Origin: Zancudomyces culisetae HAW-14-8
Taxonomy: Eukaryota; Fungi; Kickxellomycota
Direction of reading: 5' to 3'
Length of the DNA: 64,000 bases
Assembly (NCBI GenBank): GCA_052426225.1
Contig: JBNJNM010000021.1
Location: 1,550,001-1,614,000, forward strand
The notes below the pieces were generated by a model. It did not search any database. It saw only the letters and a program-made list of their open reading frames with translations, and had not been told where the DNA came from. This document shows positions 22,399-48,799 of the stretch, one piece after another; positions within the stretch are counted from its first letter, which is position 1, and each line of letters begins with the position of its first letter. A program made the position numbers and the translations under genes.

Positions 22399-22470
22399 AG
22401 CCCAACGCGGGGGTCGAACCCGCAACTTGAGATTAAGAGTCTCACGCTCTACCGATTGAGCTAGCCGGGC
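22399..22470 (-). tRNA. tRNA-Lys(CTT)
   Basis: GCCCGGC TAGCTCAATCGGTAGAGC G TGAGA CTCTTAA TCTCA AGTT GCGGG TTCGACC CCCGC GTTGGGC T; full cloverleaf with 4-nt variable region. Confidence 0.93.
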
Positions 22471-22472
22471 AG

Positions 22473-22545
22473 TGGAGAACCGGGGTATCGATTCCCGTAC
22501 CTCTCGCATGCTAAGCGAGCGCTCTACCATTTGAGCTAGTTCCCC
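22473..22545 (-). tRNA. tRNA-Ala(AGC)
   Basis: GGGGAAC...CTCGC TTAGCAT GCGAG...GTTCTCC A; G3:U70 pair; one A:C mismatch closing the T-stem. Confidence 0.92.
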
Positions 22546-22547
22546 TG

Positions 22548-23203
22548 TGTCGAGATACTAGATCCGGGTATCACGGCATAGCAACGTGTATTGGATCAGA
22601 TTACACGTTGCTGAACAATTACATTGTTCATTAAAGAAACGTTGAGATATGTATGAATGATTGTTAACAACACATTCATACACCAACGTTTCAACGCAAA
22701 CATTAATATAGTAATATTGTTTTTTATGGATGATAGTTTAGTGATTATTTTTAAAGAGTTAGTTTATATAAATAAAAGACATAGGATGAATTGGAAAGCG
22801 TCATCCATGTCTTAATATACGGACGTATAAATAAAAATCCATGTCTTAATATACGGACGTATAAATAAAAATCTAGTTCATAATAAAAAATTATATCAAA
22901 ACTACAAAAATGTACTACTCAAATGGGTATGAAGATGAGGAGATGGCAATAAGTACCACTTCATCATCTTCCGGAAGAAGTACTGGCAGCAGCATGGATC
23001 AGGATGCTGGGGTATTAAGCCCCCAGACCTTGAAAGATCTGACCACTAGCGTGCGTCAGATACAGATCCGTAGTAGCCTAGGGAGTCCGTCGGGGATCAG
23101 ACTTTCCCCTACACCTCCAAAGGGGTGTGTGTCACCCCATTCTGCGCAAATGGGGATAAGGTTACAGAGCAATTGTGTAACCCCCAGATCCCATATTGCG
23201 ACA
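22548..23203. mobile_element. Solo LTR U1 (656 bp), 2 nt upstream of tRNA-Ala
   Basis: TGTCG...CGACA ends; TSD CCTG at 22544-47 and 23204-07; homologous to U2/U3 in its right half. Confidence 0.85.
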
Positions 23204-23221
23204 CCTGTGTCGCTGTTGTAA
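22910..23221 (+). CDS. LTR-internal Ser/Thr-rich ORF (U1), possibly a Gag N-terminus
   Basis: Shares GSSMDQDAGVLSPxTLxxLTxSVRQxQIRxS with U2/U3, with many synonymous differences; open through the LTR end. Confidence 0.55.
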   Translation: MYYSNGYEDEEMAISTTSSSSGRSTGSSMDQDAGVLSPQTLKDLTTSVRQIQIRSSLGSPSGIRLSPTPPKGCVSPHSAQMGIRLQSNCVTPRSHIATPVSLL

Positions 23222-23901
23222 TTTTAGTTTGCAGAAAATTTCTCAGGAAATTTCCGCAACTAAACCTACAAAAAGTTCTGCTAATAGAGGGGGATTGTTA
23301 CTGGAATAAGTTTTACTTTATTTAACCAGTCAACCCTACCTTTTTAGCTTATATTTAATTTAGTTTTATGTATTTATTACTTCAATAAATGCGATAAAAC
23401 TGGGTAAAATTACGCCCAACTCCTAAAATTTGGTGTGCAAAACAATCAATTTTGGTCCAAAAATTAGACTCTGATACCTTTCTGATACCCTTTGAAAATT
23501 GTGTTACGCTTCACTACCTATGTTTTTTTTTGGTTTTAGGTAGGTTTTTGCTCAAATCACAAATTTCAATTTTATAGAGTAAAATCAAGTATTTTAGAGC
23601 TAATTTGTATTTTATTTAATGAATAACTTTTAAAAATAAAAAGATAAAACCACCAAACTTGTGGTGGGGTTACTAGTAATATACTAGTACCTGACTAGGA
23701 TATTAATTAGAACTTTATTTAATAGAAACATAAAATAAAACAATTAAAACTGAATATTTCTCCAACATTTGGGTAATTTATTACCCAAGAAATCCCAGAT
23801 TTCTTGCTCGAACACCCGAGATAACGGTGGTTATTCGGTGTTTGAGAAGCTGTATGCTGTTCATCCAATAGTTTAGCTTGAGTAGAACTAAGCATACAAC
23901 A
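23214..23901. mobile_element. Solo LTR family A, copy 1 (688 bp), inserted 6 nt into U2
   Basis: TGTTGTA...TACAACA; TSD TCGC; near-identical to 36791-37476. Confidence 0.9.
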
Positions 23902-24174
23902 TCGCATTATTAACAATTTGTACAATAGCAAGTGGATGTGCCTGAAAATGGTACACTCAGTGCGATAATGCAAATTCATTTTTGTTTACTTTTTTTAAAT
24001 AAATTCAAATAATTTTGAGCTCAGTATGCAATCAATTTTTCATACTGAGCTAGTTCAATAATGATGAATGTAAAATGTAAAATGATCCCATGCATTTTAC
24101 ATTTATCATTAATAACAAACAAAAATTAATAATATTATAACAATAGTCATATTTTAGAATTTAGTTTATATATA

Positions 24175-24760
24175 TGTTGCTTTGTTGATTTTCCCTTTGG
24201 CTGGACTATTCTTATTCATCCCGGCTTTACCAAAGGTAGGGTTCGCTCTTTTGTACTTTCTTTGTTAAAAAATGGAGTAAGAGTTTAGTAAAAGTTTGTT
24301 TATTATGAAAAATTATCCTAAAGTGTTTTTAAAACTTGTAAGAAAAACTAATATATTAATGACTGTTTTAACGACTAGGTAATTTGGTAAGCCCCGCTAA
24401 CAATCCTCGTTTTGGGTAAGTATTAGCGTGTTCCAAATCCTGTGTATATTTTCAGTATTTGAGTACTTAGTTTTTTTTTTTGAGATAGCTTTATTTGACA
24501 TTATTTTTTTTTTTTGTAAAACGTAAAATCTGTTTTGTCCCTCTTTTTAATTGCTTTGCCCTCCCCCGTTTCATATATAGAAAGTTTCAAAGCTCTTTAA
24601 AAATAAACTATTAACTTTTAATAAAGCATAAACTGAATAAAACATTAAAAATAAGACATCTTTATACTATATTTGCATCGAATTTTGGCGTTCATTTTAG
24701 TTGAAGTTTTCTGCGTTTTTCGAATTGACAGTGAAAATCAATTAAATTTACATTTCCACA
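24175..24760. mobile_element. Solo LTR (586 bp) nested in U2
   Basis: TGTTG...CCACA; TSD TATA; absent from the equivalent position of U3 (~43595). Confidence 0.8.
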
Positions 24761-24905
24761 TATAGTGGTTTAAAATTTGAATAATATTTTAAAGGAGACG
24801 TATGGATGACATATGATAACCTCATCCATGTCTCGATACGGAATAAAGAAAATATATTTAAATAAATTTATATTATAAAAACCAAAATTAACTCTTTAAA
24901 TTACA

Positions 24906-25280
24906 ATGTTTAACAACAACTGGATTGGAACTGGGGATGACTCCAGGAGGGAGTCATACACTTCTACCAGCATGAGCAGGGGCAGCAGCATGGATCAGGA
25001 TGCAGGGGTATTAAGTCCCCGCACCCTTGGTGAGTTGACAGAAAGTGTCCGTCAACTCCAGATCCGTAGGAGCCCGGAAGAAATGTCGGTGAGTACAATT
25101 TCACCGACACTGTACAGGGGTATTAGCTCACCCGAGCACCCCTCGATGCACATTGCATTACGCAATAGAAGTGCATCAACCATCAGTGATCGTACCAGAA
25201 CCGGTATAACACGTGATGGTAGCGCTAATGGAAGCAGTGATACTTCACATTATGCGACACCTGTGTGTTTTGTCGTATAA
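24906..25280 (+). CDS. LTR-internal Ser/Thr-rich ORF (U2)
   Basis: 124 aa, nearly identical to 43735-44130; reads through the LTR terminus (HYAT = CATTATGCGACA). Confidence 0.55.
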   Translation: MFNNNWIGTGDDSRRESYTSTSMSRGSSMDQDAGVLSPRTLGELTESVRQLQIRRSPEEMSVSTISPTLYRGISSPEHPSMHIALRNRSASTISDRTRTGITRDGSANGSSDTSHYATPVCFVV

Positions 25281-25647
25281 ATGAATTTATTTATACTTTA
25301 TTTGTTTAATATATATATATAATTGTTCAATAACTAGTATTATCGTTATATTTTAAATACTATATAGTCGTTGAATCGCGTAATCAATATATACGTTGAA
25401 TTTCCAAAACCTATTTTTATTGTTTTATCTCGAATCTGATATCTCTCTCTTTTCTCCTTCCTCTAAAATAAATACTAAATATATTTTGAATCGAAACCGA
25501 AATAATTTCACTTATTTACGGTTACGTAATTAAACCAATAAAATTCCTAAAAAATATTATTTCAATTAACCAATAAAACTAAGTATTAATATAACTAAAA
25601 ATGTTAGACTAAAGTCGTATTTGGCACTATACGACAGCACTCCCCCT

Positions 25648-27821
25648 TCAAGCTATAATGTCCTCATTATAACGTGCTTGTTTAAACGTATTTAACTTAG
25701 GTCTCAGGCGACTAGTAATTTCAGGGATCATAAATCTCGATTCGTGATATAGCTTAAGTAAATCTCCATTGACCAAATCTCGGTTCCCAAGCTGGTCTGT
25801 TATAAGGTAGGCACCTTTACTAAACCTTTTTATAATAGTAAATGGACCCTCCCAGAGAGATTCCAATTTACCTCTATCGTATTCTACTACTTTCAAAACT
25901 TTATTTCCGACTTGAAATTTTGTGGGTTTAACAGTCTTATTATATCGAATCTTCTCGGCTTCTTTCGCTGCAACGGCTTTTCGAACACCGATTTTTCGAA
26001 TTTGTGGTAAATCAGATTGCATCAGTTTAAGTCGGTGCTCGATTTGTTCGACGTCGTCTTCGATTATCCCGTTCGTCTTCCACGTCGAAGGCATTTGCAA
26101 TTCGGTTCCATAAAGCATCTCGGCAGGTGTATATCCGGTACTTTTACTGTTCATTGTACGCATAGTAAGTAGTACTTTCCACAAGTACCTATCCCAATTA
26201 TTCTTATCTACTTTGCATATTTTTTGTAATAAACTTACTAATGTTTTATTTAACCGTTCAACTTGTCCATTCGACTGCGGGCGGTAAGAAGTAGTCGGAC
26301 TGTGGTCCAGTTGCAACCAGGAGTAAACTTCCGTCAATACATTACTGACAAAACTCGAACCTCTATCCGTTATTATCTTTTGCGGTACCCCATAGTAAGT
26401 CACAATTTCGTTTATTACAAAATCCACAATAGTCTCACTTAGTAAATTTTCAACTGCAACTGCAATAGGCCATTTAGTACAATAGTCTATTGCAGTTAGT
26501 ATATAGCGATTCCCTGTTTCAGAAACAGGATTAATGGGACCGATTGCGTCCATACCGAATACTTCGAAAGGCCTAACCGCATGTACTGGATTCAAACCGT
26601 GCTTTCGAGTTCTCCCATCCTTGTACGTCTGACAAGTGTGACACCTCTTGACGTAGTCGGCTACCTGCCTGTATAACCCTTTCGAATAGTGATCTCTGCT
26701 CACTCTAGCCCAAGTATTTTCGATCCCCTCGTGTGTTTCCTCATGGACCTTTTTGACTAGTTCGATGCTTTCCGCTTCCGTTAGAACTTCTTTCAACTTA
26801 CCTATTACCCATTTGTAAATAACACCATCTATCACCTTAAAATATTTTGCTTTTTTCTTTATTTTTTCAACTAATTTAACAGTAGCTTCTCGCGGTATAG
26901 TACCGCCTAATAAATAATTTCTAACTAAACTTTCTTCACTGTATACCATTCCGAACACCTCAACATGCTCATCCTCGGTTATCTCATGTATTCCACTTCT
27001 TGACAAATGGTCCGCTGGATTGACCTTTCCAGCTATATGGACTATATCAAACTCAAAGTTACGCAGAAACATAGCCCACCTGGCTAGTCTTCCACTTAGT
27101 TCTTCACCGTTAAACATGTTAAGTAGTGCTTTATGATCCGTCCTAATAATAAATTTTCTTCCGTAAACATAAAACTTGAACTTCTTTACGGCCCACACGA
27201 CCGCCAGTCCCTCCAGGTGACTAATTGAATAATTTCTTTCCGCCTTGTTTGTAGTTCGGCTCGCGTATTCAATCGGTCATTCATTTCCATCAACCTCTTG
27301 CGATAAAATCGCTCCGACTCCACATATCGCTGCGTCCGTTGTTACAATAAAAGTTTCGTCCCAATTCGGATGTGCAAGTACTGGCGTATTTGTCATAGCA
27401 TTTTTCATTCCTCGAAACGCTTCGTCTTGTTCTTTTCCCCATTTCCAACCTGTACCTTTTTTTAATAATTGTGTTAGTGGGTTAGCGACTATAGCATATC
27501 TTTCAATAAATTTTCTATAGTATCCAGTCATCCCTAAAAATGACTGAACTTCCTTCACACAAGTTGGAGGCTTCAAATTCGCAATTGATTCTACTTTTAC
27601 CGAACTTGTAGCTATACCATCACCAGAAATAACGTGCCCCAAGTAGTCAGTTCTATACAATCCTATTTTGCACTTGTCTTTGTGTAACTGTATTTGCCCT
27701 TCTTTTAATAACTCCATAACCTCTCTTAAATCTTCTAAATGACTGTCCTCGCTTTTAGAAAAAATTATTATGTCATCTACAAAGACAACAGCTTTTTTCC
27801 AAAGCACTTTTTTTAACACAG
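25648..27821 (-). CDS. Element B pol, 3' part (RT end, RNase H, integrase), one frameshift near 27276
   Basis: VFVDD, TTDAA, ADHLSR, HEETH...CHTC, ITDRGS, GQVER, WEGPF. Confidence 0.9.
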
Positions 27822-28233
27822 TGTCACGACTTGACACTAAGTACTATATGTTTACTTGGCTATGATTTATTTAATAAAATACTATGAGATGAAAAGTATT
27901 TTATTGCTAAAGTTTCCTAAAGCAATAAAATCCTTGTCCTTATATAGTTTTACAATATACAAAATTAATTGTAAAACATTATAAAAACTATACTTAAACT
28001 ATAACTTAAACTAAATAATATTAACTGTCAACTCCACAGTTAACATTTAATAATATGGGGTAAAACCAAATTATTAAAAATTATTAATTCTTACTCCATA
28101 ATTAATAATTTATGAAGTAAGAATTAAAGCGGAGAAACGTTAATAAATTTAACATTTGCTATTTTTAATAACATATTAAAAATAACAATAATGTCATGAA
28201 TGAATCATGACATCACTCCCCTCTAATGCCTAC

Positions 28234-31200
28234 TCAAGGACCTGGCTGATTCGGATATTGGTTGTGGAAGTCGGCTACAATTTCAGGGGCGTGGACATCT
28301 GATGCGTCTTCCCATGTTCTATCCTCAGGTGCGTATCCTTTCCAGTCGATTAGATATTTCAATTTACCTTTGGATATTTTAGAGTCGAGTATAGCAGCTA
28401 CTTCGTACTCTTCTTGGTTATCAACAATAACAGGTGGAGGTGGTAGTTCTTGAATACGGTTAAACGTTTCTGTGGCCTTGTATGGTTTCAAGAGTGATAC
28501 ATGAAATACAGGGTGTATTCTCATGGTTGCAGGAAGTTTGAGTCTTGCAGCTACTGGGTTAACCATCTCAATTATTTCAAATGGTCCAATGTATTTGAAA
28601 TCCAGTTTTTGAGATGGTCTCATGGTTTTAAGATTAGTTTGAGACAACCAAACCTTATCTCCTGGAGTGAGAACAACTTGAGGGTTTCTTTTGCGATCAG
28701 CAAACCTCTTGTAGTTCTCCTTGGCCTTACTTAGGTGTAGTTTTAACTCAGTTTGAATAGTTTGCAGATGACTAGCAAACTCCTGAGCACTTGGTACATT
28801 GGAATCATTGAGGTTGCTAATCATAAACTGGGGATCATACCCATAATTAGCATGAAATGGACTAACCTTGGTACTAGCGTGAGTTGCATTGTTGTAAGCA
28901 AACTCAGCCATCGGAAGCAACTGACACCAATTATCTTGTTGATAGTTAACAAAACACCTCAAATACTGTTCAAGTATTTGATTGATGCGTTCAGTTTGAC
29001 CATCAGATTGTGGGTGGTATGCAGTAGAGTGATGAAGTTTGATGTTTAGAAGTCGAGAGAGTTCGGTCCAAAACTTGGATACAAACTGTGGGCCACGATC
29101 GGAGACAATGCTGTTGGGAAGTCCATGTAGTTTAAATACATGATCCATAAAACTTGAGGCAGTAACAGAAGCAGATGGTGTACTTTTGAGAGGGATGAAA
29201 TGAGCCATCTTGGTGAGACGATCCACAACAACCAGTACAACAGTGTTGCCCTGTGCACGTGGTAGTTCCACAATGAAATCCATTGATACTGATTCCCAAG
29301 GACGATTGGGAGTATTCAATGGCATTAAGAGTCCTGATGGCTTAGTAGACATGTGTTTTGCTCGGTTGCAGGTATCGCAAGAGTCGATGTAGTCATTAAT
29401 TGTGGCCTTCATCTTTGGCCACCAGAACTGACGTGAAACCAAGGACATGGTTTTAGCGTGACCAAAATGTCCAGCTGGCAGTGAGTCATGACACATGGCA
29501 AGAACTTGAAGACGCAGTGATTCAGGAACAAAAATCCTATCGTTGTACAATAAGATATTATCAGAACAGGAGACTTTTGAGTTGTTTAAAAGTTCTTGAG
29601 CTTGAGTATCAGATTCAGTAATTGGTTTGATTTGAGAAATGATATCACTAGTCTGGCTGGTGTCAATAGCTGCAATTACAAACTTGGGTTGCCAGATAGG
29701 TCTATCCTCAAGATTCACCCCCTCCTTATGCTCATCCTTCCTAGATAGAGCATCTGCTTTACCGTTTTGTGATCCTGGACGGTAATTAACTCGATATCGA
29801 ACCGGGTTAAGAACAGGGCCCATCTTGCTTGACGCTGATTTAGAATCTTGGCGGAGCGAAAATACTCAAGATTCTTGTGGTCGGTGATGACCAAAACCGG
29901 ATGAGAGGCACCTTCTAGATGATGTCGCCACTGCTCGAGGGCTCATTTGATGGCTAGAAGTGCCTTGTCATAGATGTGGTAGTTTCTTTCAGCAGGATTC
30001 AGCGTTCGGGAATAGAAAGCTACAGGATGAGTTTCACCATTGATTTTCTGAGATAACACAGCTTCTAGAGCAAAGTTGGATGCATCACATTCGAGGAGAA
30101 ACTGAGTTTCTGGGTCAGGATGTGAGAGAACGGGAGCTGTGGTACATTGTTCCTTGAGAGTATCAAACGCAGATTGTTGTGCTGAGCCCCAGATAAACTG
30201 GGCATTATTCTTGATTAAGGAGGTAATCGGAGTTACAATACGTGAGAAGTCTTGGATAAAACGGCGATAGAAGTTAACAAATCCAAGGAAGGATTGGATG
30301 TCCTTGACTGATTTTGGTGTATCCCAATCCAATATTGCAGATACTCGAGACGGATCCATGACTAGGCCTGCAGGTGTGATTATGAAGCCTAAAAACTCTA
30401 CTCTTTCTTGGTCAAACTCACACTTTTCAAGTTTGGCGTAGAGTTTGTGAGCGATTAGTCTTTCTAAAACAGTACGAACGTGGGTGGTATGTTCTTCAGG
30501 TGTTGCAGAAAATACCAGAATGTCATCAAGGTATATGACAACATAGACGTCTAGGATATCACGAAAAACGTCATTGACAAATGATTGAAAGGTTCCAGGA
30601 GCATTAGCCAGACCGAATGGCATAACTTTGTACTCAAACTGACCATACTGTGTTCGGAAAGCCGTTTTTTCTTCATCGCCTTTCCTTATGCGTACCAGAT
30701 TGTACGCGCCACGCAGATCAAGTTTGGTGAAGATTTTGGCAGATTGAACTCGTTCCAGTAGCTCAGTCATCAACGGTAAAGGATACCGGTTACGTTTGAC
30801 GACTTTGTTTAGAGCTCTGTAGTCCACAACTAGTCTTAAAGAGCCATCTTTTTTACCTGTGAAGAATACAGGGGCTCCAGCAGGTGATTTCGAGCGGACT
30901 ATGAAACCTTTTGCAAGGTTTTCATCGATGTACTCCTTAAGCGCTGTTCGCTCCTTTGGAGCAAGTGGGTATATTGGTCCATAAGGTAAAACAGAGTTGG
31001 GTAGCAGATCAATTGGGTAGTCATAAGGGCGATGAGGAGGTAGAGTATCGGCCTTTTGTTTGTCAAAAGCTTGGCTGAGGTCTTGATATTTACTTGGAAT
31101 AGTAGCAGTTAAGGAATCAGGAGGTAGTGAAATTGGTTTGGCTTGGTTTATCATGCCTATCAAATGATAAACAGAGTGTTTTAACTTTTTGATAGGCACC

Positions 31201-32368
31201 TTTTGTTGGAACTCAATATCACAAGAACGTTTGCGAATTGGTTCAACCGGATCAGCTGGTGGTGGAGTCATCGGGCGTAACTCTTCAAAAGTTTCCATAT
31301 CAGCACTCTGAATACTATTTTCAGAGTCGGCACTTTGAATTGAGATGTCGCTGATATCGGAACTTGGTGAAAAGTACAGCTCAGAATCCAACGAATACAC
31401 TGATTCAAGTTCATAATCTAAATCTGTTTCATATTCTGGATCAGAAATTTTATCATCATTTTCAGAATATGAGGTGGATTCTTGATCCTGAACTGACTCA
31501 ATGACTTCTTGGTTGTGTACTTGGTTATGGGGATCCTGGTTTAAGTTTTTCTGGCTATTGACAGTAATTTCCTGGCTATTGTAAGTATTTTCCTGGCTAT
31601 GGTTTTCCTGGCTGTGGTTAGTCTCCTGGTTTAAATTTTCCTGGCTGTGGTTATTTTGGCAATGGATAGTCTGACTGTGGTTATCTTTAACATGGTTTTC
31701 CTGGTTGTTAGTTTCCTGACTTTGGGTTTCTTGGCTGAGGTTATTCTGGCTAATTAGTGCTGGTCCTGGTCCTGGTCCTGGTGCTTGTCTTGACATGACT
31801 GAGGTATTAGTCTTGATAATCGTTTGATTGGATCTTTGAGTTGAGAACCTTTTGATATTGCAGTGTTTTTGGCAATATGCATTATCAAAATGAATTAATC
31901 TCTTCTTCCAATTGATAGTGGGCTCATGGTGTTCAAGCCACGGAAGTCCTAAAATCATGTCAACATGGTGGGAGTTTATGATTTCAAACGTGGCTACTTC
32001 TTGGTGAACTCCAATCTTGATTTTGAGCGGGACAGTTTGGTGTGTGATTGGACCGGCAGACATTGGAGTACCATCTACAAACTCCACAGGTATTGGAGTT
32101 GTTTTGGAAATGGATGGAATGGAATGGTTAGATACAAAACCTTGGTTTATGAACAAACCAGAAGCACCTGAATCTACCATGGCGACGATTTGCAACTTTA
32201 CGTTACTTGGGAGTAGTAAGAAACAGTGACAAGAAAACGATGGGGGTTGTAGACGTCTCGGATACTGCTGACTTGATGGACAAAGGATCTGGAACGGGGG
32301 AAGTCTTTGGTTGGGATGGTTTGGTTCAGGATTGGCTTCCCAATTAAGCCTGAACCCGGTGGTTTCCC
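28234..32368 (-). CDS. Chromovirus Pol (PR-RT-RH-IN-chromodomain) with disruptions near 29.8-29.95 kb
   Basis: [23 protein letters not shown]...[25 protein letters not shown]...YLIDWKGY...TWE. Confidence 0.92.
32311..32368 (-). promoter_or_regulatory. -1 frameshift signal: GGGAAAC plus predicted pseudoknot
   Basis: G GGA AAC (32362-68), 5-nt spacer, stem GGTTCAGG/CCTGAACC, loop TTGGGA complementary to downstream TCCCAA; lies in the gag/pol overlap. Confidence 0.8.
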
Positions 32369-36787: not shown

Positions 36788-36790
36788 TGT

Positions 36791-37476: not shown

Positions 37477-37479
37477 TTG

Positions 37480-40400
37480 TGTCGTGAATTTAAATTACCG
37501 GAAATTATATAAGAGTAAAAATGACTGTAATTTTCAAAATTGGTAATATTAAATTCACGTAACATTGAAGAAATCTGAGAAAGTTACATCTGGAAATCTG
37601 AGAAAGTTACATCTGGAAAATCTGAAAATGTTACAACCACGACATGTGAATTTGATAAGCTGATAAAAGCAAATAATCAACTACACGGGGAAACAGCAAA
37701 ATTTAATTTAGTATGATTTAATTATTAGTTAGTTAAGTATAAATTTATTTTTTAGTAAATTGGTTGCCAAAAAAAAGTATATTAAGGCAACAAAATTCTA
37801 AATAAATTCATCATGGAGTTTCGACTTTAAAAATAATTTATAAATTATACGACAGTATTTATAATAAATATATAATTAATGGTGATCCAGCCAGGACACA
37901 AACAGCAAGGAAATTGAGTAACAAACAGCAAATTTAAGCAAAAATCATGATTGGAAATTCAGCAAGAGTACCAAGACTCGCAGAACCGCCAGTATTCAAT
38001 GGATCCTCAGATCAGAATGCAAACATCTGGATTAAAGGTTTGAACTGTTTGCCCGTAGTGAGAGTTGGACTGATGAACAAAAGTTGGAGTATATTGACGT
38101 CTACTATGACCCGAGAGTTATACTTTGGAATGAGTCCGTGCAAAGTGAAAAAACTACCTGGAAAACGTATAAGAAAGCGTTTTTGAAGAAGTACACAAGC
38201 AAGGAATCCGTATTAAACTCATGGCGTGCACTACAAAGAATCAGACAGTTACCTTCGGAGAATATAGAAGACTTTATAAGTAGACTTGAGAGCCTATTTG
38301 TATCTGCCAAAGTCACGGACAAAGCTATCCAGTATCAATGCCTTATGACTGCCCTGTTACCAAGTTACCAAACTGAGATCCTGAAAAGTCGAATCAACAG
38401 CTATTACGAGGCCATTCAAAAGGCAAAAGACACAGAGGAGTTAGAAAGGTTTATACAGGACAACGTATACACCTACAACCAAAAAAGGGATAAAAGGGTT
38501 TCAGAAGGAAGACAAGAGCCAAGAATTCAGACTCATCCAGGCAAAGAGTTGGCATCCCACCGCACTAAGCCTAGACCTAAAGCTGATACTAACCCTCCAC
38601 AGGCAAAGCCCACCAACCATAGTAGTAATGAAGCTAACATGACCTTCAAGTACACTACACCTACCTGCTACACCTGCAATGAGGTCGGGCATATAAGTCC
38701 GCAATGTCCACTAAAAGCTAGGCCTACCATCCAACCCAGCTTCAACAATAAAGGAAAAGAGCTAAGTGTAGTAGAGTTATTTCAAGACCATCAAAATGAC
38801 TTAGTAGATGATATTGAGCTCCGCTGGAAAGAGCTCAGTATTATCGAGAAGCGTAAACTAATTACAGAAAATGATAAAAATATAAAAAAGAAAAATAAGT
38901 TGGAAAAACATGAAGCAGTAAACGAGGAATATGAAATAGCTAATTCTCTCGCACCGCAGTTTAAAACAGACCAGGAAACACCTGAAGGACAAAGTAAACC
39001 AATGGGAAGAATGATTGCCAAGGCAAGGGACAAGCCAACCTATTCAGTTAAACAAGACTTAGGATCTATCAAAGCTAGTATAACCTTGGAGCAGCTGATA
39101 AAAGTCTCGCCGATGGTCAGGTCAGAACTTAAGGAAGTATGCGGAACGGATAACCTAGAAAATGTCAAAGCCCTAAGCACCATAACTCAGCCTCCTAGCA
39201 CCAACTGCAAAGCCACCATATCTCTGTTCAATTGCGAATGTACAGTGGTAATCGACACAGGTGCAGCCTGTAGTGTGATGACACAAGCACTAGCAGATAA
39301 ATTTCAGTTGAGTATAGATCACTCGGCGCAAGAAATACTCCTCATGGCCGATAGAACCCCACAAGTGACTCTAGGAAAGGTTTGGAAAGTCCCAGTACTC
39401 ATCAAAAACATAAGTTTCCCAGCAGATGTATTGATCATGGCAGGAAATAACAATGATACCTTTGTGCTAGGCGTAGATTGGATAAAGAAACACAACGTCA
39501 TCATCGATTTAAACAATGACAAGGCGTCCATACCTTACAAAAACAGCAATATTTCATGGGATATATCTACTCAGGTCAAATGCAGCGATGAACTGGTAGG
39601 ATGGGCAAAGGAGGTTTCGTTAATTGAAGGCACAGCACAAACCAATACAGAGATCATCCAGTTAATTTCAGACTACAAAATGATATTCGCATCGTCATTG
39701 GAGGAACTCACCAGTACAGATCTAGTTCAGCATGAAATAGACACAGGAGATAGCAAGCCCATCAGACTACGACCTTACAGGGTCCCACAAGCTATGAAAG
39801 AGAAAGTCAGAGAAGAACTCTCAAAAATGTTGGAAAATGGTGTTATTGAAAAGTGCCAATCAGACTGGTGCGCTCCTGTGGTAACCATCTGGAAGAAAAA
39901 CGGTAAGCTCAGGGTGTGCTCTGATTACCGTAAGCTAAATGCCGTTACTAAAAGGGACACGTACCCACTCCCGAACATATCAGATATTTTCAATGCACTT
40001 GCAGGAGCTCAGTATTACACAACGCTAGACGCCCTTAGTGGGTTCTGGCAAGTGAAAATCAGGGAACAAGACAAAGAAAAATCCGCTTTTTCCTTCCCTG
40101 GAGAAGATTGTTTTGTTATAAAGTAATGCCGTTCGGACTGAGTAATAGTCCAGTCACGTTCCAGCGTTTAATGGAGACCGTATTGCAGCCACTTCTTTGG
40201 AAATCAGTAGTCGTCTTTATTGATGACATAGTTGTTTATTCACCTTCTTTTGACCAACATTTAATTGATTTAAAACTAGTATTTGAACTAATACGGAGCG
40301 CAAAAATAAAATTAAACGAGGAGAAATGCGTATTCGCTCAGCAACGCATCTCCTACTTAGGGCACGTAGTTTCAAAGGAAGGAATTGAAACTGACCACAA

Positions 40401-42747
40401 CAAGACCTTAGCTATGGCAAAAGTTCCGTACCCTAAAAACGTAAAAGATGTTCAAAGTTTCTTGGGCATGACCGGGTATTACCGGAAGTTTATTAAAGAT
40501 TATGCAAAGATAAGTAAACCATTGACAAAGTTACTAAGAAAAGATTGTCAGTGGAACTGGGACAGCAGCTGTTCGATAGCTGTAGACACTCTTAAAGAGA
40601 TCCTCATCAATCCACCAGTTTTGAAACACCCAGATTGGGGTATGACCTTTACGATCACTACTGATGCGTCCAAATTAGGTTTAGGCGCAATTTTGAGCCA
40701 AAACTACAACGGAAAAGATTGTCCTATAGCATATGCAAGCCGTACTTTATCAAAGGCTGAAGAAAATTATGCTATAACTCACCTAGAAGGACTAGGTGTA
40801 GTTTGGGGAGTTACTCACTTCAGACATTACTTACTTGGGAGACATTTTAAAATTTTCACTGACCATTCTGCACTCATTAATATCTTTAAGTCCAAAGAGC
40901 CTACGGTCGTCTAGCTAGATGGGAATTGATATTAATAGAGTATGATTACGAGATTGAACATCGCAAAGGGACTAATAATCCCGCTGATTATTTATCTAGA
41001 TCAAGCCCAGATCCACACGTTCCAGAAACTATGAATTCAAACGCATTGTTTGCTATGGACATTCTAAGATACAACTCTCTAGTATCATACCTAACCAATA
41101 GGTCATATCCGTCTGGTATGACTGAAGAAGAAAGAGAAAAGTTTAGAAACAAACTAATCCGTACAAACTGCGTGAAGGAAAACTAGTAACAGTAAGTAAA
41201 AAATTTGGAGAACGGGAAGTTCTTAATGAAGAAAACGCAGAAGAAGTTGTTAGAAGAGTTCATGAAGATGGCCACAGTGGAGTTGGTAACACTTGGGAAA
41301 AAGTGAAGTTGTTATACACTGGTCCAAGAATGTTTGATATAGTAAAAAGAGTCGTAAAATTTTGCGAGTTATGCCAAAAGTACAAAGGGCATGTAAAAAG
41401 AGTTAACCCTTTAAGTCCAATATGTTCATCAGCTCCATTCGAAATACTAGGTATTGATGCAATGGGCCCTATAAACCCAGTATCATCCAGCGGCAACAAG
41501 TATTTATTGACCGCCATGGACTACAACACTAAGTGGCCAATTTCAAGAGCCGTGGCTAACATCACCACAGAAACAGTTATTAATTTCTTAATTTATGATG
41601 TAGTCGCATTATACGGTGTTCCAAAGAGATTGATATCCGATCGCGGTTCAAATTTCATAAGCGAAACGGCTGTTCAATTTTATAAGTTCTTGGGTATTGA
41701 TCACCACCCGACTACGGCTTATAGGCCACAGGCCAATGGCCAAGTAGAAAGGTTTAATCAAACACTCAAAAATGTTTTGTCAAAGTTGTGCTATAAAGAC
41801 AAGACCAATTGGGATAAGTATTTGTGGAAAGTCCTCCTAATTATTCGTTCATCGAAACATCGGAGTATAGGTATAAGTCCATCTGAAAGTCTGTATGGTG
41901 TAAAAATAATAACACCCATATATTGGAATCCTGTGGTAACCAGTGAAAATGAATCAGAAGCTATATTGGAAAGGCTGAAGTTTATCAAAGAAGAGCTTCC
42001 AGTAATAAGAGACCAAGCGTACACTAAGTTGGTAGCAAATAAGCGCTACATAAAGACACATTATGATAAAAAAGTTAGTCCAACAAAGTACAAATTAAAT
42101 GACCAAGTACTTAGAGCCGTGGCGATGACCCAGCACAAATTTTCAGTTCGCTGGGTTGGCCCTTATCGCATAGTTAGGGTACTGGATCATGGTACTTACA
42201 TTATCATGGATAATGAAGGTAACAAGGATCATGTCAATGGTGACAGATTAAAGCCATATAATGACAGAGGATAATGATTCCTGATGTTGCTCCTAGTAAC
42301 CTCCGCACGTCCTTACAGTTCTATAAGTCAATTAACTTGTCAGATCGGGACGTCTGAAATTAAGAGGGGGTCTGTCGTGAATTTAAATTACCGTAAATTA
42401 TATAAGAGTAAAAATGACTGTAATTTCCAAAATTGGTAATATTAAATTCACGTAACATTGAAGAAATCTGAGAAAGTTACATCTGGAAATCTGAGAAAGT
42501 TACATCTGGAAAATCTGAAAATGTTACAACCACGACATGTGAATTTGATAAGCTGATAAAAGCAAATAATCAACTACACGGGGAAACAGCAAAATTTAAT
42601 TTAGTATGATTTAATTATTAGTTAGTTAAGTATAAATTTATTTTTTAGTAAATTGGTTGCCAAAAAAAAGTATATTAAGGCAACAAAATTCTAAATAAAT
42701 TCATCATGGAGTTTCGACTTTAAAAATAATTTATATATTATACGACA
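37480..42747 (+). mobile_element. Full-length Ty3/Gypsy element D (same clade as B)
   Basis: 375-bp LTRs 37480-37854 and 42373-42747 (~3 differences seen); PPT AAGAGGGGG; right flank GTTG; internal ~22-nt tandem repeat in the LTR. Confidence 0.95.
37947..42357 (+). CDS. Element D gag-pol, split by ~5 apparent single-base frameshifts
   Basis: CYTCNEVGHISPQC, IDTGA, VFIDD, TTDAS, HEDGH...CELC, SDRGS, WVGPY. Confidence 0.9.
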
Positions 42748-42751
42748 GTTG

Positions 42752-42973
42752 TGTTGTATAATTACATGTTTAACGTCCTACTGAGTAATATAATTACCCA
42801 GTATTATACAGGACGGGACTTTTATTATTATATATTAGTACTATAATTATTTTGGGTGAAAAAAACAATTTATTTATTATTCAAAACTAGACTATTTAAT
42901 GCATTAAATAATACTATTTAAACTAACCAATAAAATACAAGGAAATACAGGTAGATAATTCCACTATATAACA
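42752..42973. mobile_element. Solo LTR E (222 bp)
   Basis: TGTTGTATA...TATATAACA; homologous to M (46038-46270). Confidence 0.75.
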
Positions 42974-42978
42974 GTCTG

Positions 42979-43311
42979 TGATGTAGAACTTACAAGTTCT
43001 AAATTATTTCTTAATATAATTCTCTATCCGTGTAGTATAAAATTAAGTATTATTTTTTATATGTTTATACTATATTTAACTAATTTTAAATGTGGTTAAG
43101 AGTTATTTTATTCAATTAAGTTGTGGGCGATTGTATTAATCCCAAATATGTCCTATAATTTGTGCTAACTATAATCTAAATTTTAACTATCCTAATTATG
43201 AATGTTGAACAATAACCACAGGGGGAGAAAAAGTCCAATCTAAAAATACTGCTAATTACATAAATTATAAAATAGGTAGATAAATCGTTCCATCGTATTT
43301 CTCATACGACA
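42979..43311. mobile_element. Solo LTR F (333 bp)
   Basis: TGATGTA...TACGACA; shares ACCACxGGGGG...GTCCAATCT with G and I. Confidence 0.75.
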
Positions 43312-43318
43312 TTCATGT

Positions 43319-44088
43319 TGTCGCATTTTTAACAATTTGTACAAGAGATACACGGATGTGCCTGAAAATGGTACACTCAGTACGAAAATGCAAATTCATT
43401 TTTTGTTATTTATTTTTAAATAAATTCAAATAATTATTGAGCTCAGTATGCAATCAAATTTTCATACTGTGCTAGTTCAATAATGATGAATGTAAAATGT
43501 AAAATGATCCCATGCATTTTACATTTATCATTAATAACAAACAAAAATTAATAATATTATAACAATAGTCATATTTTAGTATTTAGTTTAAATATAGTGG
43601 TTTAAAATTTGAATAATATATTAAAGGAGACGTATGGATGACATATGAAAACCTCATCCATGTCTCGATACGGAATATTATAACAAAACAATTAAATAAA
43701 ATTATATATAAAACCAAAAGATATATTAGCAATAATGTTTTTAAACAGTTGGATTGGAACTGGGGATGACTCCAGGAGGGAGTCATACACTTCTACCAGC
43801 ATGAGCAGGGGCAGCAGCATGGATCATGTTGTAGGGGTATTAAGTCCCCGCACCCTTGGTGAGTTGACAGAAAGTGTTCGTCAACTCCAGATCCGTAGGA
43901 GCCCGGAAGAAATGTCGGTGAGTACAATTTCACCGACACTGTACAGGGGTATTAGCTCACCCGAGCACCCCTCGATGCACATTGCATTACGCAATAGAAG
44001 TGCATCAACCATCAGTGATCGTACCAGAACCGGTATAACACGTGATGGTAGCGCTAATGGAAGTAGTGATACTTCACATTATGCGACA
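43319..44088. mobile_element. Solo LTR U3 (770 bp)
   Basis: TGTCGCAT...ATGCGACA; uninterrupted relative of U2; flanks CATG(T)/CATG. Confidence 0.88.
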
Positions 44089-44130
44089 CATGTGTTGTTG
44101 TTAACTAAAATGTTTAGTTTTACTACTTAA
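43735..44130 (+). CDS. LTR-internal Ser/Thr-rich ORF (U3)
   Basis: Near-identical to the U2 ORF up to the LTR end. Confidence 0.5.
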   Translation: MFLNSWIGTGDDSRRESYTSTSMSRGSSMDHVVGVLSPRTLGELTESVRQLQIRRSPEEMSVSTISPTLYRGISSPEHPSMHIALRNRSASTISDRTRTGITRDGSANGSSDTSHYATHVLLLTKMFSFTT

Positions 44131-44428
44131 CTATACTATATAAGTAACTTACTGTATGTTTGGTATTTATACTTATTAAAACTTATATCTATTTTAATAT
44201 ACTGTTAAGCTTGTTTTATAAAATTTCAAGTGGGTGTTTGCTTTAACCCCAAAAACTTTTCGATAATTAATATTCAAAACACTAAGTGTTAAATCCATGG
44301 ACAAAACCACGGGGGGAAAAAAGTCCAATCTAAAAATAAAGATAACTATACTATAATTTAACTACAATAAAATATTGAGATTTGAAATCTCAATGCATTA
44401 AGAGTTCTAATCGTATCACTATACGACA
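44096..44428. mobile_element. Solo LTR G (333 bp)
   Basis: TGTTGT...TACGACA; F/I group motifs, same length as F. Confidence 0.75.
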
Positions 44429-44430
44429 TT

Positions 44431-44797
44431 TTTGTTAACTAATTTGTATATTTATATAGAATATCCGTTTATTTAATAGTTATGTTGGTTTTTAGATATA
44501 TAATTGGCGTCGAATCTACTTGTGGCTTCGATTAATAGGCTCACTTAATCCGTATAATGATCTTAATAAATATCTACTAATGGCTAAATACTGCCAACTC
44601 TTAGTAAATGTGATTTTTTTTCTAAAAAGATAAGATAAGAACCAAAACTTGCTATCGAAATTTCTCACTAAAAAAACCTAACAAACATTGCCAAGGCAAA
44701 AAGAGTCCAATTTCTAAAATAATTTTGATTACGTATTTCCATTGTTTTTCTCAATATCCATACACTATATTTATAAAGTATAAAATATTATACGACT
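44431..44797. mobile_element. Decayed solo LTR H
   Basis: Begins like G (TTGTTAACTAA), ends TATACGACT, retains AAAGAGTCCAAT. Confidence 0.55.
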
Positions 44798-44802
44798 TTG
44801 TG

Positions 44803-45133
44803 TGTTATAGAATTTCACAATTCTAAGAAAGTTAAATATTCTTATTATAATATATGTTTATTACTAAATATAATATTTTTGTATTATTGTTCTTTTTAAT
44901 ACTATATATGTTTAACTTATTATAATGTTAAAATGTATGTATTATTTAATACCAAGTGGGCGGTTGCTTTAACCTCCAGATATTAATATATTTAACGAGG
45001 AAATAAAATGTAAAAAACTACTAAACTATTGGACAAAAACCACAGGGGGAAAAAGGTCCAATCTCAAAACTATTAACTAAAAACCTAATAAATAAATAAA
45101 GCTAATTATATAAAATCGTATCTTCATACGACA
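44803..45133. mobile_element. Solo LTR I (331 bp)
   Basis: TGTTATAG...CATACGACA; F/G group motifs. Confidence 0.75.
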
Positions 45134-45135
45134 TG

Positions 45136-45538
45136 TGACGGAATTTAATTTTTCCTTGTCGGTTTTACCCGACTTTACCGCCATAACAAGTATTTTTAAA
45201 GTGATACTATTACCTAATAACTACCTGAAGACGGTAGGACCCAGATTCAATGGATTAATGTGTATAATTTCGATTATAAACTAAAGAAAAAAGATACTGA
45301 ATTCAGTAGGTCAGATTCTATGCCTTATATCTGATCTCTCATAATTTAAATAAACTAACTATATTATAAATATATAAGAAACATTGATAAAATTAATATA
45401 AAATAAATATAAAATTATTATAAAAATTAATAGAGATTTACACGGGAAAAACCTCATAGGTGAAAACACCGTGTATGTCTTTGCACATCACACGAAAGCA
45501 CCCGTGTGATGTACATCCTGTCGCATATTGATGCGACA
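45136..45538. mobile_element. Probable solo LTR J, hairpin-rich
   Basis: Ends TGCGACA, degenerate start TGACGGA; bounded by neighbouring LTRs. Confidence 0.5.
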
Positions 45539-45543
45539 GTTGT

Positions 45544-45737
45544 TGTTGTGAAATTACTGAAGAATTATAATCCTTTTTCCCACTGGGATTTTTTGATTGT
45601 AAATTCCGATGTAATTTTAAACAATCAAATTCACAATGATGCCATCATATTACATCACAGTGAACGTAAATCAGTTGACGTCACTGTGAATGTAAATCTA
45701 ATGACATCACTGTTAATGTAAATCGATCTAGTTCAAC
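45544..45737. mobile_element. Probable solo LTR K with internal ~24-nt tandem repeats
   Basis: TGTTG...TTCAAC (terminal A missing); three ACRTCACWGTKAAYGTAAATC units. Confidence 0.5.
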
Positions 45738-46033
45738 TGTCGTGAGTCTTTACACTCACACCAATTTAAACAATGTTTTCTGTTTTCATATGAATTAGGC
45801 TATCTTATATAATTTATATTAATAATTATTTAGTTTATTTAAAGTTTATAAAGCGTTTCTAGAAGTATAAAAGACGTTCTAATTCATTCAGAGAAGGAAG
45901 AACAACATTTTTATTTTATAAATTAATTAATAACATATATAACAATATCAATATAAATATAAAATTTAAAATTTAAAATATTAATAGTATCATAATAAAT
46001 TTTAGTATATTAATACAAGCTATTAATACGACA
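45738..46033. mobile_element. Solo LTR L (296 bp)
   Basis: TGTCGT...ACGACA termini. Confidence 0.65.
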
Positions 46034-46037
46034 TTGT

Positions 46038-46270
46038 TGTCGTGTAGTGAAAATGCTTAACCTCCTACTTGGTAACTTTCGCTACCAAGTACTACATGGG
46101 ACGGGTCAATTTCAATATTATATAATTTTATATACTTATTTTATATCTCGGAAAAGAACAATTTATTAATTAATTCCATTCAAATATATTAATAATAATT
46201 CTATAAAATACATAAATAAAACTAAACAATAAAATTATGACAACTCTTCAGTTTAGTTTACTATACGACA
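46038..46270. mobile_element. Solo LTR M (233 bp)
   Basis: TGTCGTGTAGT...ACTATACGACA; homologous to E. Confidence 0.75.
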
Positions 46271-46275
46271 TGTTG

Positions 46276-47127
46276 TGTTGTATCATAACCGGTGAATTTA
46301 TTCTATTGAACTATTCTACTTATAAAATTGTACTAGTTTATTTGCTATTAAAACTTGCAATATACTTATTTTGATCTGGAGTAAAAAGGTTGTTCTTTAT
46401 TTTTCTTCTTTGTTGTTGTTAAATACTATCTAAACTAAACTTAAATAAACGTAAAACTAATCACATTCCAACCAAAAACACTATTGTTAAAAATGATAAG
46501 GATGTGATGAAATTAAACTAGATATGATAACTATTATTCAATAATTAAAAATGGCTATAATTTCTGCTATACAACAGAATTCTTCCGCTCTAAGCGCTAA
46601 TGCCCTCATAGCGTGTGTTTGACTTATATCTTCTAAGTTTAGACTTCAATGGATTAATCGGCTCAGGAATCATATTATCCTTGGTATGATAGGGTTTCAA
46701 ACTGTCTCCATGGACTAAGTCGCGATTATTAAAATCATCTTGTATTACGTATGCACCTTTATCAAGAGCTCTTACTACTCTGTATGGTCCTTCATATAGC
46801 TTTTCGAACTTCGTACGTTCGTATTCTATCAGTTTAAGTACCTGTTCACTTCTTTTAAAAGTACGTTTTACTACTCGTTGATTATACCTGACTTCGCTTG
46901 AAAACTTCCCTATAACCAGCTTTTCCACACATAGCTTTCTCAACTCCGGTAGATGGTCAGTTACAGCTTTTATACGATCGAGTACCCTTACTTCAAATCT
47001 TTCTATTTCACCTGTACGTTGCCATGCATGAGATATTTCGATCTGGTATCCAAAAAGCATTTCTGACGAGCTCAGTCCAGTAGACTTTGATTTCATGGTT
47101 CTAAGTATCAACAGAGTTTTCCACATA
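46276..47127 (-). mobile_element. Truncated Gypsy element N: 3' LTR (46276-46576) plus integrase C-terminus
   Basis: TGTTGTAT...ATACAACA; ORF 46590-47126 (YEGPY, DLVHGDSLKPY) homologous to B and D; cut at a TA by a Tc1. Confidence 0.85.
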
Positions 47128-48797: not shown

Positions 48798-48799
48798 TA

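Follow-up and report, generated by a model that had tools for sequence, protein, structure and literature searches.

The genome of the mosquito-gut fungus Zancudomyces culisetae carries a layered, 24-kb pile of LTR elements at one tRNA-Ala/tRNA-Lys gene pair. In the window analysed here (a stretch of 64,000 nucleotides, within which all positions are given unless a contig number such as C21 precedes them), 17 top-level LTR units, each bounded by TG...CA and together representing approximately 13 nucleotide families, follow one another in an unbroken series from 22548 to 46576 (Table 1). It starts upstream of a dicistronic tRNA-Ala/tRNA-Lys gene, at a distance of 2 nt; the members of this gene pair score 50.3 and 64.7 bits, respectively, against Rfam; comparable tRNA pairs, 2 nt apart and with matching scores, are found at several other places in the genome. 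From the tRNA outward the units are ordered U, A, F, B, C, A', D, E, g1, F', G, H0, H, J, K, L and N, with gaps of 0 to 11 nt between neighbours; 15 of the 17 are intact from end to end, and B and N are minus-strand units, D a plus-strand one. The original prediction had described this arrangement accurately (some 17 abutting units, their distance from tRNA-Ala and the orientations of B, D and N).

Its map of the individual units was amended in several places. Two units that had been separated (‘U1’ and ‘U2’) form a single 656-bp LTR, which recurs whole at C12:749616 and C22:254104 with 94% identity and whose 3' half is 77% like F; the F LTR is present twice, with A lying just inside the proximal copy; and two nested guests, a chromovirus in B and a 586-bp LTR in F, were added. 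Beyond the pile, where N is cut short by a mariner element, the sequence is not unique DNA but remains transposon-rich, and contains the mariner, a second TIR element, chromovirus fragments and a DIRS-like element.

Table 1. Features of the tRNA-anchored pile, listed from the tRNA genes outward (TSD, target-site duplication)
Feature	Position	Strand	Description
tRNA-Lys(CTT)	22399-22470	-	ARAGORN; Rfam RF00005
tRNA-Ala(AGC)	22472-22545	-	ARAGORN; Rfam RF00005; 5' end at 22545 is the pile anchor
U	22548-23203	+	656-bp solo LTR, 2 nt from tRNA; TSD CCTG covers tRNA positions +2 to -2
F (proximal copy)	23208-25259	+	~770-bp LTR, interrupted by A and the nested 586-bp LTR; TSD CCTG
A	23214-23901	+	688-bp solo LTR, inserted after 6th nt of F; TSD TCGC
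Nested 586-bp LTR in F	24175-24760		TSD TATA
B	25271-36188	-	Full-length single-ORF gypsy element, 5.09 kb without guest; LTRs 366 bp; TSD GTTT
Nested chromovirus	27822-33654	-	Inside B reverse transcriptase; 5-bp TSD CACAG
C	36192-36787	+	596-bp solo LTR; TSD TGTT
A'	36791-37476	+	Solo LTR, the deeper of two from family A; TSD matches at 3/4 positions
D	37480-42747	+	5.27-kb gypsy element; LTRs 376 bp; ORFs in three pieces; no chromodomain
E	42752-42973	+	Solo LTR
g1	42979-43311	+	Solo LTR
F'	43319-44088	+	Solo LTR of F family (~770 bp); CATGT on each flank
G	44093-44428	+	Solo LTR
H0	44433-44796	+	Solo LTR, final A missing
H	44803-45133	+	Solo LTR
J	45136-45538	+	Solo LTR
K	45541-46033	+	Solo LTR
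L	46035-46270	+	Solo LTR
N	46276-47126	-	301-bp LTR (46276-46576) and C-terminal integrase part; cut by mariner at 47127
Inverted-duplicate block	44430-48688		H0 to N, integrase fragment and mariner (47127-48688); 4.26 kb

By their encoded domains, the families that built the pile are Ty3/gypsy (Metaviridae) LTR retrotransposons: B, C and D each match gag, protease, reverse transcriptase, RNase H and integrase in Pfam, and have LTRs that begin with TG and end with CA. A Pfam Chromo domain was found in none of these three elements, and is present only in the guest nested in B, which encodes gag, PR-RT-RH and an integrase with SH3_Tf2-1 and Chromo (PF00385, E = 3e-13) domains. A single gag-pol ORF spans 1431 aa in B and 1480 aa in the full-length, chromodomain-free element of the C family (at least 39 copies at 91-98%), and relatives align to within approximately 10 residues of the C-terminus. 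An AlphaFold model of the B integrase (residues 1120-1431, mean pLDDT 82.5) predicts a catalytic core, a long helical linker and an SH3-like C-terminal barrel, followed by a tail of approximately 27 residues with pLDDT below 50; the model resembles the Ty3 integrase (7q5b) with a TM of 0.66, and at the level of sequence the similarity to Ty3 is no better than that to a foamy-virus integrase.

An intact 1431-aa copy of B, 99.5% identical, is present at locus L015. The B primer-binding site (PBS) starts with TGG, 1 nt past the 5' LTR, and over some 15 nt is the complement of the tRNA-Thr(AGT) 3' end, CCA included; genes for this tRNA were seen in L012, L013 and L016. The candidate PBS of D, also TGG-initiated, lies at an unusual distance of 24 nt from the LTR. 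Family A numbers at least 40 copies at 95-98%, with full-length elements recognized by coordinates as LTR pairs approximately 5.7-6.1 kb apart, while F is a non-autonomous gag-protease element, whose 826-aa ORF contains only a zinc knuckle and an aspartyl protease. The H LTR belongs to a full-length element located, in L001, 7 nt upstream of a tRNA-Lys.

The order in which these layers arrived was reconstructed by removing the elements one by one from the tRNA outward and checking the TSDs at each step. This restores perfect 4-bp TSDs for U, A, F, B and C in turn (Table 1), and places each of the five insertions between -9 and +2 relative to the tRNA 5' end; CCTG is found three times, as expected from the use of one site twice, by F and later by U. 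Through the TSD chain, an arrival order of C, B, F, A and finally U (the youngest layer of the pile) is well supported for these proximal layers. TSDs by themselves do not suffice to fix an order, and the polar one is the parsimonious choice because it alone places every insertion in its family's usual window. The predicted ‘ordered record’ of invasions stands for these five layers, whereas polar stacking of the distal ten is unproven: the TSDs of A' and D agree at only three of four positions, and part of the far end is an inverted duplicate. Polarity is also not strict, since the chromovirus, whose insertion was not aimed at the tRNA, and the 586-bp LTR both entered away from it.

Whether the layers also grow older with distance was a further element of the prediction, and here the data give a trend only. 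The farther out a unit ranks from the tRNA, the lower is its best identity to any other copy (rho -0.75, p = 0.002), and A' scores approximately 45 bits below A against the same 36 copies; however, private substitutions in the proximal and distal copies of the same family (7 in A versus 8 in A', 6 in F versus 10 in F') do not differ significantly. The ends are decayed in some of the six solo LTRs from G to L. The differences between paired LTRs in B (1 of 366 sites) and D (3 of 376) are in line with the earlier claim. LTR divergence is a noisy clock here, because the LTRs of the nested chromovirus differ at 6-8 sites, against the single site in the B element that hosts it.

A different origin for much of the pile, and for its distal half especially, would be segmental duplication or inversion, or unequal recombination among piles that are linked to tRNAs, rather than a chronology laid down in situ. 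The block from 44430 to 48688, which takes in the distal 2.1 kb of the pile, recurs in inverted orientation approximately 20 kb farther along (C21:1619040-1623300) with 99% identity and with boundaries at element ends, so that the distal layers may have come by rearrangement; the adjacency of g1 and F' is repeated at C2:4942-6040 and C21:1299921-1300928 (94%), tandem LTR-internal-LTR arrays of F and B show that recombination is active, and a matching TSD is missing from the B copy in L015. Set against this, rearrangement would not yield a coherent TSD chain through five proximal layers, and the duplication spans the last six layers only. Moreover, A and A' (97%) and F and F' (93%) are independent insertions, because the members of each pair are no more alike than random members of their family. 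As an account of much of the pile, rearrangement is considered unlikely, and stepwise insertion is preferred.

Across the genome, the LTR families of the pile (approximately 12 to more than 40 copies each) are strongly concentrated upstream of tRNA genes, as had been predicted. Of 130 copies of the A, F, C and B LTRs, 25 are found upstream of a known tRNA gene and 3 downstream of one, counted out to 10 kb, where 2.8 would be expected per side (p = 8e-17 for the enrichment and p = 3e-5 for the asymmetry, values that overstate independence because the tRNA list, with 63 genes scored, is partial and the LTR copies cluster). No known tRNA occurs within 10 kb, on either side, of any of 38 other chromovirus LTR copies, and the control DNA transposons (mariner and the second TIR element, 42 copies) show no association, with 2 upstream and 3 downstream at the same distance. 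Many of the chromovirus LTR copies are found 2-3 kb from contig ends. Six 5S genes were found, all within regular 13.2-kb rDNA repeats and none beside a listed LTR copy.

Contrary to the original prediction of a single re-used site, this site is not special: at 11 of 20 sampled tRNA loci a repeat ends 1-10 nt upstream, and several of these carry piles; some tRNA loci have repeats downstream as well. Singly occupied loci display the same offsets and likewise 4-bp TSDs, with A in L017 (AACA) at a gap of 8 nt and H in L001 (ACAA) at 7 nt, and an F array in L014 (ACTG) lies 3 nt from its tRNA; gaps read from coordinates alone are 3, 7, 7, 8 and 9 nt. The TSD is thus 4 bp in eight clean cases (U, A, F, B and C, together with L017, L001 and L014), F' alone having a 5-nt match. 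Measured to the mature 5' end, the gaps are 2-10 nt at these 11 loci and at the pile, and the elements target the tRNA 5' end throughout the genome. The TSD chain, the offsets of 2-10 nt elsewhere and the asymmetry all bear out the central claim that gypsy elements lacking a chromodomain re-use such a site and push older copies out.

The tRNA could in principle be a bystander in a generic transposon-rich, possibly pericentromeric, island, where elements accumulate through random nesting and relaxed selection. The contig is 3.4 Mb long and the locus sits close to its midpoint, further tRNA genes being found at distances of 28 and 46 kb, transposon-rich DNA runs on from 46.6 to approximately 62 kb, and the occurrence of repeats downstream of some tRNAs would also fit. 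Random nesting, however, would cut LTRs anywhere, rather than leave nearly all units whole and abutting; every reconstructed insertion point falls within 10 nt of the tRNA, the same families adjoin tRNAs at otherwise simple loci, upstream copies outnumber downstream ones, and it is the chromovirus and mariner, nested away from the tRNA, that have no association with tRNAs. This explanation is already largely refuted, and we regard it as very improbable. Even less credible is a concatenation of repeats by the long-read assembler, for which it can be said that the only public run found consists of contigs holding 14% of the sampled words. Misjoins would yield neither a succession of junctions with matched 4-bp TSDs nor an LTR interrupted precisely behind its 6th nucleotide with TCGC duplicated; comparable piles are seen at numerous loci spread over several contigs, and the same LTR-tRNA adjacency is seen in an independent, older short-read assembly (LSSK01001220.1, L036), where a B-family LTR ends 6 nt before a tRNA-Gly.

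The pile is, very probably, the product of repeated position-specific integration at the tRNA-Ala/tRNA-Lys 5' end by a radiation of single-ORF, chromodomain-free Ty3/gypsy elements. Integration takes place in a window of approximately 10 nt at the 5' end of this Pol III-transcribed gene (between -3 and +2 around the mature 5' end for the F and U families, and between -4 and -9 for A, B, C and H). Each new cDNA would be joined between the tRNA and the preceding element, generating a 4-bp TSD and, because it enters at that point, pushing older elements outward; most elements have since been reduced to solo LTRs by LTR-LTR recombination, and the tRNA gene would have had to remain a live Pol III target throughout all of these hits. 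The chromovirus in B, the 586-bp LTR in F, the DNA transposons and the 4.26-kb inverted duplication at the far end represent a later overlay that was not aimed at the tRNA. A Pol protein, probably the integrase, may be tethered to the Pol III initiation complex, through TFIIIB or TFIIIC.

A bolder possibility, which we put forward tentatively and consider somewhat doubtful, is that in the Harpellales a third way of targeting Pol III genes has evolved independently of the Ty3-TFIIIB and DGLT-A-TFIIIC routes. More than ten gypsy families, together with the gag-protease-only parasites of these, would use it, with strand transfer at the first tRNA nucleotides and with piles that are layered records. 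If so, tRNA-anchored piles across the genome would constitute layers that can be cross-referenced, because insertion is so precise and polar, and would give the order in which transposon families invaded.

The Ty3 integrase binds the TFIIIB subunits TBP and Brf1. Ty3 itself is a Ty3/gypsy element of Saccharomyces cerevisiae that integrates within a few bp of the point at which Pol III begins to transcribe tRNA genes, irrespective of orientation, and whose solo LTRs remain upstream of these genes (PMC5911963, PMC8632968), habits that the pile families share; grouped with it are Ty3p, Tj1 of S. japonicus, Tyl3, Ylt1 and Tyl6 of Yarrowia, and Beta and Tca8 of Candida albicans. The pile families differ from Ty3 in their 4-bp TSD (5 bp in Ty3), in the spacing between LTR end and mature tRNA 5' end (2-10 nt, against approximately 15 in Ty3), in the duplication, by the F and U families, of the first 1-2 nt of the tRNA itself, in their single gag-pol ORF, and in their number (more than ten families in Z. 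culisetae, versus one). In Ty3, a vestigial chromodomain that follows the C-terminal domain binds Brf1, whereas the B model has no folded domain there; contact with the Pol III machinery cannot be made through a Ty3-type vestigial chromodomain. The chromoviruses (Tf1/Tf2, MAGGY and Skipper-1) accommodate the guest in B but not the pile-building families, which have no chromodomain.

A likeness in organization exists to DGLT-A of Dictyostelium and other dictyostelids, a single-ORF, chromodomain-free gypsy element that occurs upstream of tRNA genes, for the most part in solo-LTR form, with several related families per genome and non-autonomous or ORF-less relatives that have the same preference. 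It inserts farther away (10-34 bp upstream, a distance also given as 13-33 bp from the mature tRNA, and 55-65 bp in D. lacteum), is present in tens of copies per genome, and inhabits an amoebozoan, while the host of the pile is a fungus of the Zoopagomycota. DGLT-A binds Tfc4, a subunit of TFIIIC, through its RNase H and through the N-terminal domain of its integrase (PMC6101501). The contrast drawn earlier with Ty3 and DGLT-A, as elements usually found in isolated copies, was overstated, since repeated integration at one tRNA gene has already been noted in dictyostelids (PMC5006619, Table 1 footnote). The principle is known from yeast Ty3 and amoeba DGLT-A, and the pile of Z. culisetae is an unusually deep case of it, in a new lineage.

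The pile was divided into units by comparing the window with itself, by searching the genome and by inspecting the junctions; 17 top-level units were recognized, separated by spacers of 0-11 nt, each of which begins with TG and ends in CA save where an end has decayed (for example, in H0). The unit count and coordinates of the original prediction were, after corrections, borne out. A 586-bp TG...CA unit within the proximal F carries a 4-bp target-site duplication (TATA) and has no second copy among the genome matches listed for the region. Self-comparison first suggested that an A-X-Y block (23214-25266) had been duplicated to 36791-37477 and 43321-44095; this reading was rejected because X and Y together form a single LTR family (F, present in over 40 copies) and because the copy pairs (A and A', 97% alike; F and F', 93%) are no closer than random members of their families.

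Features of the pile and of related loci (plain positions are those of the window; C numbers with coordinates, contigs of the assembly; L numbers, individual loci extracted for inspection; ranks are counted from the tRNA, and primes mark second copies of a family)
Feature	Position	Strand	Description
tRNA-Lys(CTT)	22399-22470	minus	1 nt from tRNA-Ala
tRNA-Ala(AGC)	22472-22545	minus	5' end 22545, start of outward ranking
Rank 1, U	22548-23203		656-bp solo LTR
Rank 2, A	23214-23901		688-bp solo LTR
Rank 3, F	23208-25259		interrupted by A and by 586-bp LTR (24175-24760)
Rank 4, B	25271-36188	minus	nested chromovirus 27822-33654; primer-binding site 35808-35822
Rank 5, C	36192-36787		solo LTR
Rank 6, A'	36791-37476		family A, second copy
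Rank 7, D	37480-42747	plus
Rank 8, E	42752-42973		solo LTR
Rank 9, g1	42979-43311		solo LTR
Rank 10, F'	43319-44088		family F, second copy
Rank 11, G	44093-44428		solo LTR
Rank 12, H0	44433-44796		solo LTR
Rank 13, H	44803-45133		solo LTR
Rank 14, J	45136-45538		solo LTR
Rank 15, K	45541-46033		solo LTR
Rank 16, L	46035-46270		solo LTR
Rank 17, N	46276-46576 (LTR)	minus	interior to 47126; cut by mariner 47127-48688
Second DNA transposon	48797-50412		terminal inverted repeats
Reverse transcriptase ORFs	53984-56950	minus
A at another tRNA	L017		gap 8 nt; duplication AACA; singly occupied
H at another tRNA	L001		gap 7 nt; duplication ACAA; singly occupied
F array at another tRNA	L014		gap 3 nt; duplication ACTG, tRNA nucleotide +1 included
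B at another tRNA	L015		gap 7 nt
B beside tRNA-Gly	LSSK01001220.1		gap 6 nt; independent assembly
C at another tRNA	C15:1841406		gap 9 nt
Other tRNA piles of these families	C15:1841396 onward; L013, L014, L016		C15: C element, 1 nt, A element
Empty tRNA sites with upstream motif	L003, L004, L005, L010, L011, L012, L018
tRNA pairs like that of the window, by spacing and score only	C21:1544206-1544352, C21:2949540-2949686, C10:644242-644388, C12:2075927-2076073		tRNA types unassigned
g1-F' adjacency elsewhere	C2:4942-6040, C21:1299921-1300928, C12:504080-505193, C12:510318-511432
LTR-sharing tandem arrays	C6:1371390-1377951 (L014), C12:1000162-1014661, C23:322268-325929, C9:182199-185863
Chromovirus LTRs near contig ends (examples)	C15:2280, C12:2265, C6:1961, C9:2662, C22:3227, C8:13270, C11:5236742, C6:2914444-2920414, C21:3418246

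The order in which the proximal layers arrived was read from their target-site duplications by removing the elements stepwise (plus strand, tRNA at left). A CCTG duplication flanks U (its left copy being made up of the first two tRNA nucleotides and the 2-nt spacer), and the removal of U leaves an 8-nt spacer between the tRNA and A. A is flanked on both sides by TCGC, and the 6 nt to its left are a genuine F LTR start (compare the start of F' at 43319), which places the insertion of A within F, at a distance of 5 to 8 nt from the tRNA. With A taken out, only 2 nt separate F from the tRNA, and F too has CCTG on both sides; since U has the same flanks, one site received two insertions, and three copies of CCTG are now seen. 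Removal of F then places B 9 nt from the tRNA, flanked by GTTT, and removal of B places C 8 nt from it, flanked by TGTT. The removal order U-A-F-B-C thus puts every insertion at -9 to +2 relative to the mature tRNA 5' end, and any alternative order would require at least one insertion hundreds of bases away from the tRNA, yet only a few bases from a junction. The duplications of A' and D match at three of four positions, and those of E, g1 and the layers beyond D are ambiguous owing to TG-rich spacers.

A comparable offset is found elsewhere in the genome. Among 20 additional tRNA loci that were sampled, 11 have a repeat end 1-10 nt upstream of the tRNA, including singly occupied sites and further piles of the same families. 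Seven of nine empty tRNA sites carry ACA, a run of 5-8 A and then (G)TT or GTG just before the mature 5' end (-14 to -1), a shared motif that may mark where Pol III starts; the LTRs, which end in ...ACA, place ACA about as far from the tRNA as it is in this motif. In Smittium culicis (L035), a polycistronic tRNA cluster is preceded, at less than 500 bp, by an element whose two 442-bp LTRs are identical; an assembly gap covers the junction.

The genome-wide distribution of LTR copies agrees with the original prediction of enrichment next to tRNA genes. When search-output coordinates were compared with a partial list of 63 scored tRNA genes, 25 of 130 LTR copies of families A, F, C and B were found within 10 kb upstream and 3 within 10 kb downstream, against a chance expectation of 2.8 per side. 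No association with these 63 genes was seen for 42 copies of the mariner and a second TIR element (2 upstream, 3 downstream), and none of 38 chromovirus LTRs lay within 10 kb on either side; the 11 D-like LTRs gave none upstream (four lie at 10-18 kb) and one downstream. The 5S rRNA genes, examined as further Pol III targets, are located in rDNA arrays. At least 10 of the 38 chromovirus LTRs lie near contig ends (positions 2-15 kb from an end being strikingly common), which suggests that this family, unlike those that target tRNA genes, prefers subtelomeres or heterochromatin.

The tRNA-Lys/tRNA-Ala pair that anchors the pile resides in a 27.1-Mb assembly of 25 contigs, and an older, independent Zancudomyces culisetae assembly (LSSK01001220.1) shares with it DNA that is 99.7% identical. 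A dictyostelid origin, considered at first in view of the transposon repertoire, was rejected once a full-length element of the genome proved to have a 99% identical protein named from Z. culisetae, a gut fungus of mosquitoes (Harpellales). Pairs with the same spacing and matching scores occur at several other sites, tRNA-Thr(AGT)/tRNA-Thr(TGT) pairs are likewise recurrent (L010-L016), and the window pair and its counterparts look like dicistronic Pol III units. Tight pairing, with 1-6 nt between members, is common in the genome, and a Smittium culicis contig carries Val-Glu-Met triplets with spacers of 2-3 nt (L035:6446-6673 and 10766-10993); these arrangements are probably polycistronic Pol III units. 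The anchor tRNA-Ala scores 50.3 bits in Rfam, as compared with 65.9 bits for one member of each similar pair (not typed as Ala), and its acceptor stem is intact, including the G3:U70 pair.

The age gradient of the original prediction fared less evenly. The farther a unit ranks from the tRNA, the lower its best identity to another copy (rho -0.75, p = 0.002, with distal units searched less deeply), and A' scores about 45 bits below A against the same copies. However, private substitutions (7 in A versus 8 in A'; 6 in F versus 10 in F') differ in the expected direction without reaching significance. The LTR pairs of B, D and the nested chromovirus differ at 1, 3 and 6-8 sites, respectively. A guest is necessarily younger than its host; by LTR divergence the chromovirus looks older than B (a difference that is not significant), so that this clock should be treated with caution here: either homogenisation has acted on the LTRs of B, or LTR divergence keeps time poorly at this locus. 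The piles themselves offer an internal relative clock of transposon history that is independent of LTR divergence, which looks noisy at this locus.

Not every layer need have arrived by independent, targeted insertion. The segment 44430-48688 has an inverted copy, 99% identical, about 20 kb away, so the last six layers may be a copy taken from another pile or the template for one. The g1-F' adjacency (42979-44088), including its 7-nt spacer, recurs elsewhere at 85-94% identity, which would be unexpected from independent insertions and could reflect a composite LTR or a segmental copy. Finally, the pile also receives insertions that are not aimed at the tRNA, as the nested chromovirus and the 586-bp LTR demonstrate.

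Elements B, C and D encode gag, aspartyl protease, reverse transcriptase, RNase H and integrase, and a domain search returned no Chromo domain match in any of the three. Intact single ORFs are present in copies of B (1431 aa, at L015) and C (1480 aa, at L009), and there are LTR pairs with only 0-1 differing site. F is a 2.9-kb non-autonomous unit, the 826-aa ORF of which begins within the LTR and encodes only a zinc knuckle and a protease. Tandem arrays in which successive interiors share LTRs (LTR-interior-LTR-interior-LTR) have periods of 2900 bp (F) and 4712 bp (B); the F array at L014 contains three identical LTRs, and a single 4-bp duplication flanks it as a whole. B has a primer-binding site complementary to the tRNA-Thr(AGT) 3' end, and 7 nt separate the intact B copy at L015 from the tRNA-Thr(AGT) gene downstream of it, so that this tRNA serves the family both as primer and as one landing site. 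Both SH3_Tf2-1 and Chromo domains are present in the guest of B, a chromovirus that has a 5-bp duplication. Among the neighbouring elements, that which cuts N is a Tc1/mariner with terminal inverted repeats (DDE_3, HTH_Tnp_Tc3_2; 29 or more copies at 88-95%), the second DNA transposon has at least 13 copies, and the minus-strand ORFs join a Dam-type N6-adenine methyltransferase domain to a reverse transcriptase and an RNase H-like region, the signature of a DIRS-like retroelement.

The precision of insertion, its occurrence in both orientations and its dependence on tRNA genes match a model in which the Pol III initiation complex would tether the pile elements, as it does Ty3 and DGLT-A (PMC8632968, PMC6101501). 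In the modelled integrase of B (pLDDT 82.5), a long helical linker joins the catalytic core to an SH3-like C-terminal domain, beyond which about 27 residues are disordered; the model superposes on the integrases of Ty3 and foamy virus. In Ty3, a vestigial chromodomain of the integrase touches Brf1, whereas the B model has no domain at that position; the duplication is 4 bp in the pile elements rather than 5, and they sit closer to the tRNA. The missing chromodomain counterpart and the 4-bp duplication imply that contact with the Pol III machinery probably differs from the Ty3 type.

[quoted passage not shown] A fungus that diverged early and in which many families are, or recently were, active provides a natural comparative system for the tethering of integration machinery to the Pol III apparatus, and for how a tRNA gene can remain functional while its entire upstream region is repeatedly replaced. 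It combines intact ORFs and nearly identical LTR pairs with a duplication length, an insertion offset and an integrase architecture that all depart from those of Ty3.
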